This document shows positions 36,773 to 42,524 of a stretch of DNA of 64,000 nucleotides, one piece after another (the stretch's first letter is position 1; the number at the start of each line of letters is the position of its first letter). Made by a program: the position numbers and the translations under genes. The DNA is from Oikopleura dioica (taxonomy: Eukaryota > Animalia > Chordata). A model generated the notes under the pieces. That model saw only the letters and a list, made by a program, of their open reading frames with translations. It did not search any database and was not told where the DNA came from. The stretch is taken from contig OU015566.1 in the NCBI GenBank assembly GCA_907165135.1, forward strand, positions 6,882,001-6,946,000, given 5' to 3'.

Positions 36773-38750
36773 ATGGCAAGAACCGAGTGGTGTTTGAAAT
36801 ATAGTGAGGTTAAAAGATGTTCCACGACAAAAGCAAGAGCTGGAGTTTTTGAAACGAGCAGGGGAAAAGTTCACACTCCCGTGTTCATGCCAGTTGGGAC
36901 GCAAGGAACGATGAAGGGGATTACAGTCGAGCAGATGAAAAATATGAGTATGGATTGCTTTTGAAATCGTGAAGTTGATTGTGTTTCAGATATTGAAATT
37001 ATTCTGGCAAATACGTATCATCTGGCGCATCAGCCAGGCACGGAAATTCTCGACAAATTTGAAGGCGTCCATAAGTTCATGGGCTGGGACAGGAATATTT
37101 TGACCGATTCTGGCGGCTTCCAAATGGTCTCTCTTGTCCATCTGACTACTCTGACGGAAGAGGGAGTAGAATTCGCTTATCCTCACGATCAAACTAGGAA
37201 ATTAATGATGACACCAGAAGAAAGCATGAGAATTCAAAAATGCATCGATTCCGATATTGTTATGCAACTAGACGACGTGGTTTCCGCTGGAATTGGCCGT
37301 GGCCCGAGAATTGAAGAAGCTGCGGAAAGATCTGTTAGTTGTTAGGTTTTCCACGTTTTGTCGAGCGCAATTTCGACCGGATACATATTCATTCCCGCGC
37401 GGGGAAAAAGTTAAATATTTGAGCAAATTGGAAAACCAGGTTAAAGATGGCTAGATCGATGCTTGGAGTCGCCATTGGGCGTCAATCAAAATATTTTCCC
37501 GATTATTCAAGGTGGCCTTGATCCAGAACCGAGGATCAAGTGCTCGGAAGAAATGACGAGGAGGAAGGCGCCTGGATTCGCGATTGGTGGCTTGAGCGGC
37601 GGAGAGACGAAGGATGAGTTTTGGAGAGTTATTCACAACTCTGCGCCGCTTTTGCCAGTTGATAAGCCGAAATATTGTGTGAGTGAACTAATTGGAGATG
37701 GATTTTCATCTGGCCTTTGGACGAACAAGCATTTAACTAATAGTTTCATTTTACAACGCTAATGCCAACGGTCTGTTGAAGACATTATTCGTCATTTACC
37801 TATTCCTTTATGGTTTTTCTAAGATGGGAGTAGGCTATGCTTTGGACCTGATCGTTTTGGTCTCGCTTGGAGTAGACATGTTCGACTGTGTGTACCCAAC
37901 ACGAACAGCGCGATTTGGCCACGCACTTCTGATTGATGGCAAAGAACTTGACATCAAGCGAGGCGAATACTCGCTTGACACTCGTGAACAGGGTTTCTGA
38001 TTTACAAGTCTGGAATTCGCGTCCAAATAGTCAATGATTGACTGGTTGATTGATTCAATTCACAGTCAGAAACCCAGAAAAGCCCGGTCGAGCCCGGATG
38101 TCCCTGCGAGTGTTGCAAAAATTACACAAGAGCCGGTCTCCACATTCTATTCCGTTCCCGCCAGTCGGTTGCAAGCTCCATTTTGTCGATTCACAATCTG
38201 ATGCATCAAAAACGACTAATGGTGCAAATGCGTGAGGCAATCATTGCGGAGCAATTTCCTAGTTGGGTTTATGCATATTGCGAAAAGAACTACTCAGGTA
38301 AGATGCAGCTAATGTGTTTTCGATTTCAAAGAGGAAAGACCCCGTTTTATTTCATTTAAATTTCATCATAAGCATCAGATGAGCATCGATTTAAAGTTCT
38401 CATGTATGGTACTTTAACCTCTAAATTATCTACGGTACCCAAACAAATTAAATAAATGCCCGGGCATATTAAATACCTGATAAGAATGGGTGGGAAGATT
38501 TGGGAATCATTTTATTGGTATTTTCTTTTTGTACAAGTTGACAACTCAAATTGAAAATTGAATTTCGATTTCAGACGGCTCACTTCCGCAATGGGCATCA
38601 AATGCCTTTTCCGAGGTCGGCATTGATGTGAGTAAATTTGTTGGCAAGAATATGAAGGACAAGGAAGAAAGATCGAGCAGACATGATATGAAGAGTTTCA
38701 AGTCGAATCCGAAGGAAAGTGAAAGAAAAGAAGATGCTGTAAAATTGTAG
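36773..38750 (+). CDS. QTRT1: Queuine tRNA-ribosyltransferase catalytic subunit
   Basis: [87 protein letters not shown] and the Zn site CPCECC..HN. Confidence 0.97.
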
Positions 38751-38840
38751 AATTCTGTTGCGCTCTGGATCTTTCAAAATATAGTAATAAATTTTGGCAA
38801 TATACACAGAAAAAATGGGCTAGAATTCATGCTTCGAGAG

Positions 38841-40108
38841 CTAGCTCTTTTCGTCTTCAGTATTTGTAACCGTCAGATCAGCTTCTCCAGCAAGTGGAGC
38901 TGCTAGTGGAGAGCTCTCGTTTATCAATTCTGAGTCTATCTGGGGATCCTCTTTGATTTGATTGATCGAGCTAAATGTGACTGTAAGTCGTACGTTTCCA
39001 GTAGCGACATTATTATTATCGAGTGGCCATTAGTCTTAATTTGGCACTAAATTCTCCTTCTGGCAGGACCTACCTTTCAAACTCATCATCATTAGATCGA
39101 CCTCGTTTCACCATCGTAACGATGATCAAGGCTAAAGTGATGAAAACAAATCCGCATCCAAGTGCGATGACGATCATGACCATCAGTTCTTCTCTTCCGA
39201 TATTCTCTGACTCGGGATCTTTCAAATACTGAAGCGCTGTTTTTCTTTGAAATTTTGACATGGCGTACCTTTCTTGCGAGACTCTGCAGGTCTTCAACGA
39301 AAATCGGTTGAGCATTGCAAGCATTTTGGTGATCCCATGATGAGTCTGCGCATGCACAAGCAAATTTGTAAGACATCGTCCCATTTGGCGTAAAATGAAC
39401 CCATTCCTCTGAAGAATATTATGTCATTCTCAAAGCTGAAATTCCCAGACTATCAACTTTTTCATTGATTATACATTCCTGCTGATTCTTCGTAGAATAC
39501 TTATTTCTCTCAAATATAAACTTTACCTGGATTCACGCGACAAACTCGCTCAACTTCTGGATTGAATAGGGGAAATAGCTAAACACAGTTATTGCGGAAA
39601 AAGAATCGATTACAACCTTTTTGATATCAGCAGATTTCTCACATCTAAACTTCGCCTTTATCCTCATCGTCGTCAGCGTTCCATTCATGAACCCATAATC
39701 CTCAAAGGTCTTGTAATCTCCAGGCTGCAAGTCAAAGCTCGCCAAGCACACTTCTCCCTCACTACAAATCTCGCATTTTTATTTGACAACTACATTCACT
39801 TCCTTACTCGCAAAGGCTGACAGCGTTGCAATTTGTTCTATCAGTAGTAGTGGAGCAACTCGATCTGTCGCAGCTGATTTCTTTATATTCGGCGTACTTC
39901 GTCAGTGGATCCATACATTGGCGACACCAGACTGGTGGTTTTTTATCTGTAGGAGGTCCTTCAAATTAAAATTGAGAACTTTGTGCATGCTACAGTGTCT
40001 TCAAGAAAAAAATAGACAAGAAACGCGATGGAAAACACTGCGTTTTCTGTTCTCCTTGATACCTTGTGCTTTTGTCAATACAAGCAATTCTAGTGCCAAT
40101 AATCTCAT
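38841..40108 (-). CDS. TGF-beta type II receptor-like ectodomain + TM + ~55-aa tail, no kinase domain
   Basis: Signal peptide MRLLALELLVLTKAQ; 12-Cys ectodomain from WCRQC to FACAC..ACNAQPIF; TM MVMIVIALGCGFVFITLALIIVTMV; stop at 38841-38843. All junctions can be read as phase-compatible GT-AG. Confidence 0.8.
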
Positions 40109-40452
40109 AACTTCTCAAGCGTAAAATCTCTAATGTACAAAAAAGGTGAAGAAAGACAAATCTTGGAATTAACTAGGGTCAGATAATGGAAGGCGCTTGA
40201 GTTTGTTTGTTCGTGGCCACAACCTTCCAGTCAATTAATCACAAGTCTAACGTACTTCCTTTTAAATCTTTCTGGTCAATTCTTTTCAAAAGAAATCATC
40301 TTGCATCGGTGTTATTTTATTTTGTGAGGAATGGAACATTTTTTTGCGGAGAGAATTGTACAAACTTGATTCTTGCTAAATTTACAATATGGTACAGCTT
40401 TTTTCACAGAATTGTATAAATAAATAAACTTGTCTCTCGACATCGAGAAAGT

Positions 40453-42524
40453 TCAAAGTTCAGGGCTTCCACAGATAGTGTTTGTATCTGTCGTGAATGT
40501 TTCCTTCCACACGTTGTCTTTGCAGGTCAGTTTGGCGGTAGGCACATACCCAGGGATGAGGCATTCGAATGAGCAATGCAAGCTCCCTCGTTTGTGGCTG
40601 CACTTGATTGCTTCAATGTCTGTATATACAGAGGAGAGACCTTGCGGAGAGCAGATGTTTTCTTCATCTGCGTCTAAGTCTACATAGTTCCAGTTAGATC
40701 CTTGTCTTCAAAGTTTAACCTTACCAATGCTCCGCATTTTTTCAATTTGATTTGGTCTCAAAAACTCTTTCGAAGATATCTTTTCTTGCAAAGAAAGCTT
40801 CACAAATCTTCGAATATCTTTCGGCAGAAATGCTTTCTTCCGCCGGAGCATTCGTTCTTTGAATCGGTCAGCGAGCATTTCGCGTTTCTCGAGTTCTTTT
40901 CTTCTTTCGACCATTTTCATGGCGCGGCGCTGTGCTTTCAGAGCTCTGCGTTGAGCTCGAGGAGATTCTGAAAAAGTACTTTTATAAAGCTTTTGATGAC
41001 TTACAGTACCATCGATGCTATTCGCGCTTTTGAGATTTATCTTCCTCGCCATGCTCCTCATCTTGCCGGATGTCATTTGCGCGCCCATATCAATCGCCTG
41101 AATCAAAATTTAGCGCCGCTCAAATAGAAGCTTGTCAGACCTTATTCACGAGCCAGCCAACAAAGGGTTGAATCTGTGTCTGAAGACCAAGTGGCCGACC
41201 CATGTCGCAACCGAGCCCAAGTGAAGTTAATCCAGCGATGACCGGTCTATAAATAATGTCAGTGAATCTCTTCCTTGATTTCAGCGTTCTTACTTGTTCT
41301 TGTTCCACATGACAAATGGCGATCCGCCGCTTCCAGTGCAAGTTGGTCTTTTGCCACTCCTCATCATTTGACCAGTGCAAAACGTTTTCTCCTTAATTCT
41401 AGCGTCTTTCCGAGTTCATGAACTTGAACATTACCGGATCAAAAAAGTGGAATCCTCGCTGACAAGTCTCAACAGGCTGTATTCTTAGCGGATCATCGAT
41501 GATCTTTTTCGAAGGCGTTCCGAACTGGCTCAAATCTCCCCAACCAGCAGACGCGCCCAGGCTGTTTTCTTTGATAATCGTTGATTTCCGGTGAACCAGG
41601 CAAATTGGATACGACGAAATGGATATCTCAGCGGGCTGGGCGAGACGCAAGAGGCAAATATCGTACTAAAAGGCTCATGAATAAGAGTTTCTCAGTTGCT
41701 GCTTACTTGATGAGTTGCTATATTAAATTTTTCATGCCTTCTGAAATCGATGATTCTGACCGACTTCTCAGAACTCCAAGGACCTTTGCTGGTATCAAAA
41801 AGATGAAATACAATCATTTTACATAAGTGTGTTTACGTCAGAAGACGATTGAAAGGAAAGCTAAATTATCCGAGCTGATACCGTCCTTGACTTCCGATAT
41901 ACACCTCGTGTCCGACCGGATTATGGCAGCAATGAGCGGCCGTCTACCTAAAGGTCCAAAAACGCACCCATATTTACCCAAAACAGGTGGAATCATTTTA
42001 TATTGTCAAATTGTGAAAGGAAGAGGGGAGCAGCTTTTCACGTGAAAAACAAGTGACTAAGGGGTAGGGGAAGGGTGAGTCCGATAAATCTAATAGACTT
42101 GTTCCGGGAACGTTTTGGACCCCGACCAGAACAAAACGCGGACCGAGGAGCGACCCGACGCAACGACCACCAAGACTGACTAGCCAAGGCCAGCGATAGC
42201 GATTCTCGCTACTTTTTGGGTCCTGCAATTGTTGAGCAAAAACGGTGAGATTGGAAGGCGGCGGGTAAGCTTCGTTTTCAAAATAATCCTGAAATTGATC
42301 TGATTGAGGTAAGGTCATCTTTTACTGGAGAAAACAAACAAGTTTCAAAGTTCCACGTGTTTTTGTTGATACTCAAAATTTTAATCAAAACCTCGCGCAT
42401 TCAAAAATCAAGGTAGAGACTCCAAAATGCTTAGAAACCATCATTTTACCTCGCAATAAAGTTCTGAATCTTCATTTGCCAAGACTGCTTCCAACAATAA
42501 AATCCAGAAGCATGCTAGCTTCAT
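40453..42524 (-). CDS. Secreted trypsin-fold pseudo-protease with basic linker and C-terminal Cys-rich (sushi-like) module
   Basis: Signal peptide MKLACFWILLLEAVLA; WPWLVSLGGRCVGSLLGPRFVLVGVQN (no TAAHC); YDICLLRL; SAGWG; CTGSGGSP in place of CxGDSGGP; GLTSLGLGC. Confidence 0.8.

Follow-up and report, generated by a model that had tools for sequence, protein, structure and literature searches.

Among natural pseudo-receptors of the TGF-beta pathway that lack a kinase, BAMBI is, to our knowledge, the only well-known one; it mimics type I receptors and acts by forming non-signalling receptor complexes. Engineered dominant-negative forms of the type II receptor TbetaRII (TGFBR2) block signalling by binding both the ligand and the type I receptor without phosphorylating the latter. 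The appendicularian Oikopleura is a chordate characterized by heavy gene loss and fast evolution, and it has reportedly lost Nodal.

In LU domains, the last Cys is always directly followed by Asn, and the boundaries of LU exon sets are mostly of phase 1 (PMC6600238). In humans, it is the TGF-beta receptors that combine a transmembrane anchor with a single LU domain, and the LU genes listed include BAMBI as well. Loop 1 is long in type II receptors. TbetaR2 stands alone in that one ancestral disulfide is missing from its ectodomain and two have been added, in loops 1 and 3, which brings the count to 12 Cys residues (PMC6600238). The count of 12 ectodomain Cys that an earlier, sequence-only reading of the locus described here had given for human TGFBR2 agrees with that review, and the human peptide string that it had quoted proved correct as well, as human TbetaRII chains in the PDB read SNCSITSICEKPQEVCVAV.

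The analysed window, i.e. the whole stretch of DNA under study, comprises 64,000 nt of Oikopleura dioica (assembly GCA_907165135.1, contig OU015566.1, positions 6,882,001-6,946,000 of the forward strand), and all coordinates given below are window positions. At 38841-40108 of the minus strand, the sequence and its three-frame translations yield a seven-exon gene encoding a 272-aa ORF, the six introns of which (104, 46, 38, 118, 40 and 103 nt) all have GT..AG ends (Table 1). The ectodomain of approximately 150 aa contains 12 Cys residues with spacings of 2, 14, 4, 8, 5, 5, 34, 20, 21, 1 and 10, which span 136 residues from the first to the last, beginning with C27-x2-C30 and ending with C162-N163, and includes the strings NCNAVSLCDEGEVCLA and FACAC...ACNAQPIF. 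A TM helix at approximately residues 193-218 (19-residue hydropathy peak of 2.98), which carries one further Cys, is followed by KRGR and a 53-aa acidic tail, in which a Pfam search recognized no known cytoplasmic domain. The Cys spacing given in the sequence-only reading matches the spliced ORF exactly, both of its strings were located in the translation, and the TM helix and tail of about 55 aa that it described are borne out by these measurements. As read from its sequence, the product is a type I membrane glycoprotein with one disulfide-rich ectodomain and six predicted disulfides.

Table 1. Features of the receptor-like gene and its surroundings (window positions). X1, marine metatranscriptome contigs; X5, oligo-dT RNA-seq; L007, cDNA contig of a second lineage.
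Feature	Position	Strand	Description
Exon 1	40063..40108	-	Start codon and 15-aa signal peptide MRLLALELLVLTKAQ; 46 nt, followed by a phase-1 intron
Exon 1/exon 2 junction		-	Also spliced in L007, second lineage
Exon 2	39808..39958	-	Residues 16-66; Cys 1-6, C-x2-C-x14-C-x4-C-x8-C-x5-C
Exon 3	39617..39761	-	Residues 66-114; Cys 7-8, long loop, conserved NGT sequon; 3' junction in X1 contig
Exon 4	39527..39578	-	Residues 115-132; Cys 9; both junctions in X1 contig (39575/39617, 39408/39527)
Exon 5	39269..39408	-	Residues 132-178; Cys 10-12, FACAC-x10-CN-AQPIF, second NGT sequon
Exon 6	39074..39228	-	Juxtamembrane linker, TM helix, KRGR, acidic stretch; junction with exon 7 in X1 contig and X5 reads
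Exon 7	38841..38970	-	Cytoplasmic tail and stop TAG (38843-38841); first 24 residues conserved
3' UTR	38714..38840	-	At least 127 nt, unspliced; overlaps the end of the QTRT1 coding sequence
Ultraconserved stretch	38935..39046	-	Last ~77 nt of intron 6 and first 35 nt of exon 7
QTRT1 (queuine tRNA-ribosyltransferase) last exon	38575..38750	+	Stop at 38748-38750

By the criteria of PMC6600238, the Oikopleura protein shows hallmarks of LU domains: its Cys array starts with C-x2-C and ends with CN, and the signal-peptide exon is followed by a phase-1 intron. Its first loop is long, as in type II receptors. The canonical LU size of 60-90 residues with 10 Cys is exceeded, a departure from the consensus that TbetaR2 displays too. 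As judged by the order of Cys residues and not by their connectivity, a 12-Cys TbetaR2-type framework with a C-x-C...CN end is present and invariant in the three Oikopleura lineages compared below, and the partial Cys spacing of chicken TbetaRII (x6 ... x5, x6, x16 ... x1, x4) is colinear with it, the Oikopleura loops being longer.

The Pfam, PDB, ESM-Atlas and AlphaFold2 analyses of the protein were performed with an orthologue from a sister lineage that is 79 % identical overall to the window protein (ectodomain encoded by L007:75-608). Pfam and PDB searches with single-exon pieces from the window, which are too short, were empty. The comparison with receptor and LU profiles that the sequence-only reading had proposed for its type II derivation did not bear it out: neither the whole ectodomain nor any of four sub-pieces matched Pfam ecTbetaR2 (PF08917), Activin_recp, UPAR_LY6 or BAMBI at E<=10, although very weak matches might be hidden by HMMER filters. 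The better profile match to Ly6/uPAR proteins that the same reading had named as contrary evidence was likewise not seen. Matches to the bacterial PF13316 (DUF4087; E 0.004-0.03) fell below the cut-off and were taken as chance. In the PDB, where TbetaRII represents 12 of 177,635 distinct sequences, the sole match at E<=10 for residues 55-84 (the finger-1/2 core) was the chicken TbetaRII ectodomain 1KS6, a weak hit (E 2.4) that pairs RSNCNAVSLCE-DGEVCLAS with TSNCNITSICEKNNEVCAAV and is lost when the query is lengthened; phmmer retrieved no TbetaRII for the whole ectodomain or for residues 22-84, 44-87, 140-172 and 155-178. Single-sequence AlphaFold2 prediction gave a pLDDT of 35 for the precursor and for the mature core alike, and thus no usable model, and no deeper alignment was available because the relatives are limited to three close Oikopleura lineages. 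An internal duplication of the ectodomain, hinted at by MAFFT, was rejected, as 0.63-0.92 of 2000 shuffles scored at least as high in local alignment.

Embedding comparison with ESM-Atlas (7.7 million clusters) pointed in the same direction as the PDB match. The nearest cluster, annotated as 'TGF-beta receptor type II' (PF08917), reached 0.86 with the mature ectodomain as query, 0.84 with the full ORF P0003 and 0.77 with residues 100-178 only, a piece that does not overlap the one matching the PDB. As all of these scores lie below 0.9 in the tool's own calibration, they serve as leads only, and the Atlas recognition value of 1969 is lower than 2300. The remaining named neighbours are mostly families of the same three-finger clan (Activin_recp, UPAR_LY6, Toxin_TOLIP, CD59 and LYPD6). 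With no Pfam match, no relevant whole-domain PDB match and an AlphaFold model of such low confidence, membership in the TbetaRII family is not demonstrated by any standard test. Nevertheless, the claim of type II derivation keeps a weak footing in three agreeing leads, namely 1KS6, the Atlas cluster and the colinear 12 Cys, from which we infer a three-finger fold and TbetaRII ancestry.

These leads can also be read as the signature of a generic three-finger membrane protein of the Ly6/uPAR type, an adhesion or junction organizer or a modulator of channels or receptors with no relation to TGF-beta, the likeness of which to TbetaRII would reflect a convergent Cys framework. The UPAR_LY6, Toxin_TOLIP, CD59 and LYPD6 clusters score only slightly under the TbetaRII cluster, no receptor family gave a significant profile match, and an N-terminal C-x2-C with a terminal CN is a general trait of LU domains (PMC6600238). 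On the other hand, the TbetaRII cluster ranked top in three Atlas queries, including the C-terminal half alone, and the only PDB match was again to TbetaRII. The protein contains 12 Cys rather than 10, with C-x-C instead of a CC box ahead of the last disulfide, and it has a TM anchor and a conserved tail rather than a GPI anchor, an arrangement that characterizes the TGF-beta receptor group in humans (PMC6600238). A generic Ly6/uPAR protein is therefore considered unlikely, if still deserving of attention.

The failure of the profile searches would also be accounted for by a lineage-specific orphan, with a disulfide-rich fold that is new in appendicularians or has diverged there beyond recognition, and with a function on which known families shed no light. 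A search of 1.84 billion representatives with exon 2 returned one real relative, the 80-aa fragment P0001 (a second hit, P0002, was a spurious repeat protein), and searches of 5.8 billion proteins with the ectodomain and an exon 5 profile, restricted by length range and shared words, added no relatives from outside the Oikopleura dioica complex and no exon-5-sized candidate fragments from other species. The lack of homologues in these collections, the lack of significant Pfam or PDB matches, the pLDDT of 35 and the low Atlas recognition value are all in keeping with an orphan. However, Oikopleura proteins evolve fast, so that failed profile matches are to be expected, and the independent weak signals agree on one superfamily and, inside it, on one family. 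The Cys-Asn end and the phase-1 boundary of the signal-peptide exon also suit LU domains. Taken together, an orphan fold appears quite improbable. The protein collections searched hold only the ORF fragments P0001, P0003 and P0004 and no complete model of the protein, and in the literature searched we found no description of the gene, no relevant paper on Oikopleura TGF-beta receptors and no hit for the TbetaRII peptide string.

The contigs that encode P0001 (L001-L006), together with L007 and a third lineage reached through P0004 (L008), provided two complete orthologous models of 274 and 275 aa. In these two other Oikopleura lineages, the gene has the same exon boundaries, and its product retains all 12 Cys together with the two NGT sequons, the TM helix and the tail; the amino-acid identity among the three lineages is 78-89 %. 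Exon 2 is 82 % identical to P0001, every Cys being invariant across the three lineages, and exon 5 is the most conserved of the coding exons, with 42 of 46 residues invariant. Divergence from the window lineage has brought synonymous sites close to saturation (pS ~0.7), while pN is 0.08-0.10; dN/dS is ~0.05 in the ectodomain and ~0.03 across the TM helix with the proximal tail, the latter value coming from the comparison of the window with L002, the only one with an estimable dS. Approximately the first 36 residues of the tail (KRGR..DDEFESSINQIKEDPQ.D..LINE) are kept in all three lineages, and the last ~20 evolve almost neutrally. The ectodomain, the TM helix and the proximal tail are thus under purifying selection, and the conserved part of the tail, in which D..LI comes after an acidic, Ser-rich stretch, may have a role in sorting or partner binding.

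Transcription of the gene was followed with reads and contigs mapped onto 36800-42300. Introns 3, 4, 5 and 6 are spliced in X1 contigs, which are 90-99 % alike to the window and derive from a near-identical strain; small mismatches at the joints are explained by the in-frame deletion of one codon together with synonymous changes. A search for the exon 4/5 junction among public metagenome contigs recovered L007, a metatranscriptome contig of 1504 nt that lacks introns 1-4 and 6 and keeps intron 5. The two sources combined provide cDNA support for all six introns. Ends of X5 reads across the exon 6/7 joint, encoding ...RGRPDDDEFE and ...LINEGSPL, correspond to the sequence of the diverged L008 lineage. 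The spliced mRNA is therefore present in at least three independent data sets. The 74-nt 5' UTR of L007 is colinear, and thus no trans-spliced leader is seen on the receptor-like mRNA.

The sequence-only reading had regarded the protein as kinase-less, and had named splicing to distant kinase exons as the observation that would contradict this. One X1 contig, which spans 38714-38970 and 39074-39106, runs from exon 6 through exon 7 and past the stop without further splicing, and L007 likewise continues beyond the stop codon as 3' UTR. When the entire window was scanned in six frames, the minus strand, including the 38.8 kb downstream, proved free of HRDxKxxN and other receptor-kinase motifs, which makes splicing to kinase exons very unlikely, and the protein terminates at the same place in all three lineages. 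The kinase-less character of the product accordingly stands, and the gene is supported as real, expressed and devoid of a kinase.

Intron 5 (39229-39268) is spliced out in an X1 contig and retained in L007:609-790 and in the corresponding ORF P0003, which then ends with ...ARKVRSYN. The retained form could be a secreted ectodomain without the TM helix, i.e. a soluble isoform, or could be just pre-mRNA.

The gene converges on a neighbour identified as QTRT1 because three of its exons match Pfam TGT (E 1e-6 to 1e-17). The gap between the two stop codons is exactly 90 nt, as the sequence-only reading had stated, and the identity that it gave for the neighbour is upheld. The 3' UTR of the receptor-like gene overlaps the last coding exon of QTRT1 at 38714-38750. 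On its opposite strand, L007 contains the 3' end of QTRT1 as well, likewise spliced (L007:1075-1469), so that two mRNAs are joined tail to tail in this contig; since it holds both in spliced form, the convergent mRNAs overlap and have sense-antisense 3' ends in common. Within QTRT1 (37957-38084, plus strand), reads from the diverged lineage (X5-X7) jump 126 nt, with 28 other letters between and GC..GC ends, which is probably an alignment effect of an intron and diverged exon ends rather than a non-canonical intron. Upstream, on the same strand as the receptor-like gene, 40708-41400 contains a 132-aa basic ORF rich in Lys, Arg and Glu that is expressed and spliced in X5 reads (41096/41140) and that has no match in Pfam.

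A decaying remnant or mis-modelled fragment of a full-length receptor kinase gene, as might be supposed from the presence of ORF fragments alone in protein collections, is effectively refuted, because low dN/dS (~0.05) and a layout conserved in three lineages, with frames, splice sites and stop region intact despite saturated synonymous sites, rule out a pseudogene or chance ORF, and because the mRNA is spliced in independent data sets and the gene, with no kinase motifs downstream, adjoins and overlaps QTRT1.

The highest conservation in the locus is found outside the ectodomain, in the stretch that straddles the intron 6/exon 7 boundary, counterparts of which lie at ~2225-2335 of L002 and ~4840-4950 of L008. 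Its three-way invariance is 0.88-0.95 per 40 nt vs 0.65-0.80 in the coding exons, despite saturated synonymous sites, and its substitution pattern is not coding-like. The element matches no family in Rfam, shows no significant fold on either of its strands and has no second copy in the window or in viral contigs. It may control splicing of the tail exon, where use of an alternative acceptor (38980) would give a product ending in ...EFESHI, or it may be tied to the overlap with the antisense QTRT1 transcript.

Overall, the protein lacks a kinase and is probably a TbetaRII-like pseudo-receptor. Its architecture, which is that of a kinase-deleted TbetaRII and is analogous to that of BAMBI, makes a non-signalling pseudo-receptor for a TGF-beta-family ligand, a type I receptor or both the most likely function, to which we assign about an even chance. 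The protein would be exposed at the cell surface, where its ectodomain would bind the ligand and/or the type I receptor; with no means of phosphorylating its partner, it would serve as a naturally occurring decoy or dominant-negative receptor, the type II counterpart of BAMBI. Within the same reading, it may alternatively serve as a ligand-presenting co-receptor. Both ligand binding and an inhibitory role are suggested by analogy with these systems. A more elaborate and somewhat doubtful scenario is that appendicularians evolved a natural dominant-negative type II receptor from a TbetaRII-like ancestor, which has been strongly selected since the split of the cryptic Oikopleura species, and that its output is tuned by the intron 6/exon 7 element and by retention of intron 5 to give membrane-bound, tail-variant and secreted forms in a rewired TGF-beta pathway.

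What is probably new is a BAMBI-like pseudo-receptor with an ectodomain resembling that of type II receptors, the family link being the main uncertainty. If the pseudo-receptor reading is true, a conserved natural type II mimic would represent a second, independent animal route to damp the TGF-beta pathway and would provide a ready-made, evolution-tested 'dominant-negative TbetaRII'. It would also help to explain the reorganized TGF-beta/BMP signalling in Oikopleura. Even without a link to TGF-beta, the gene encodes a conserved and expressed protein, predicted to be located at the cell surface, that is known in protein collections from ORF fragments only, and it therefore deserves annotation.

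Among described proteins, TGFBR2/TbetaRII (PF08917; 1KS6, 1M9Z, 1KTZ and 2PJY) offers the closest comparison. Each is a type I membrane protein with one disulfide-rich, 12-Cys domain at the N terminus. The order of Cys in the two is colinear, with a C-x2-C start, a C-x5-C-x5/6-C core and a C-x-C...CN end followed, after three residues, by IF, and SNCN..S(I/L)CE..EVC provides a weak local match (E 2.4). In contrast to TbetaRII, the Oikopleura protein has a 53-aa acidic tail and no Ser/Thr kinase, and four of its loops are much longer (x14, x8, x34 and x21, with x10 before the last Cys). Glu119 of TbetaRII, which we take to be a ligand-contact acid at the interface with TGF-beta, aligns with Ala. 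The type II receptors ACVR2A/B and BMPR2 (PF01064, Activin_recp) are also type I membrane proteins with a three-finger ectodomain, which is predicted here, and a long loop 1; they differ in having 10 Cys, a CC(C) box and a kinase, and their profile finds no match in the Oikopleura protein. CD59 and LYPD6, of the Ly6/uPAR group, have the N-terminal C-x2-C, the terminal Cys-Asn and the phase-1 intron past the signal peptide in common with it, but are proteins of 60-90 aa with 10 Cys, such proteins being mostly GPI-anchored or secreted, whereas the Oikopleura protein has a TM helix and a conserved tail.

BAMBI resembles the Oikopleura protein in the succession of a signal peptide, an LU-type ectodomain, a TM helix and a short non-catalytic tail. 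Its ectodomain, however, resembles that of type I receptors, with a CC box and a total of 10 Cys, in contrast to the 12 Cys and C-x-C-x10-CN end found here, and the Oikopleura tail is unrelated and shorter; the Pfam BAMBI family matches neither ectodomain nor tail. The Oikopleura protein is thus not a member of the BAMBI family, though it may work like BAMBI. The engineered, kinase-deleted TbetaRII likewise consists of an ectodomain, a TM helix and a short tail. It is an artificial truncation, whereas the Oikopleura gene, with its much diverged ectodomain, is natural and has been kept by selection.
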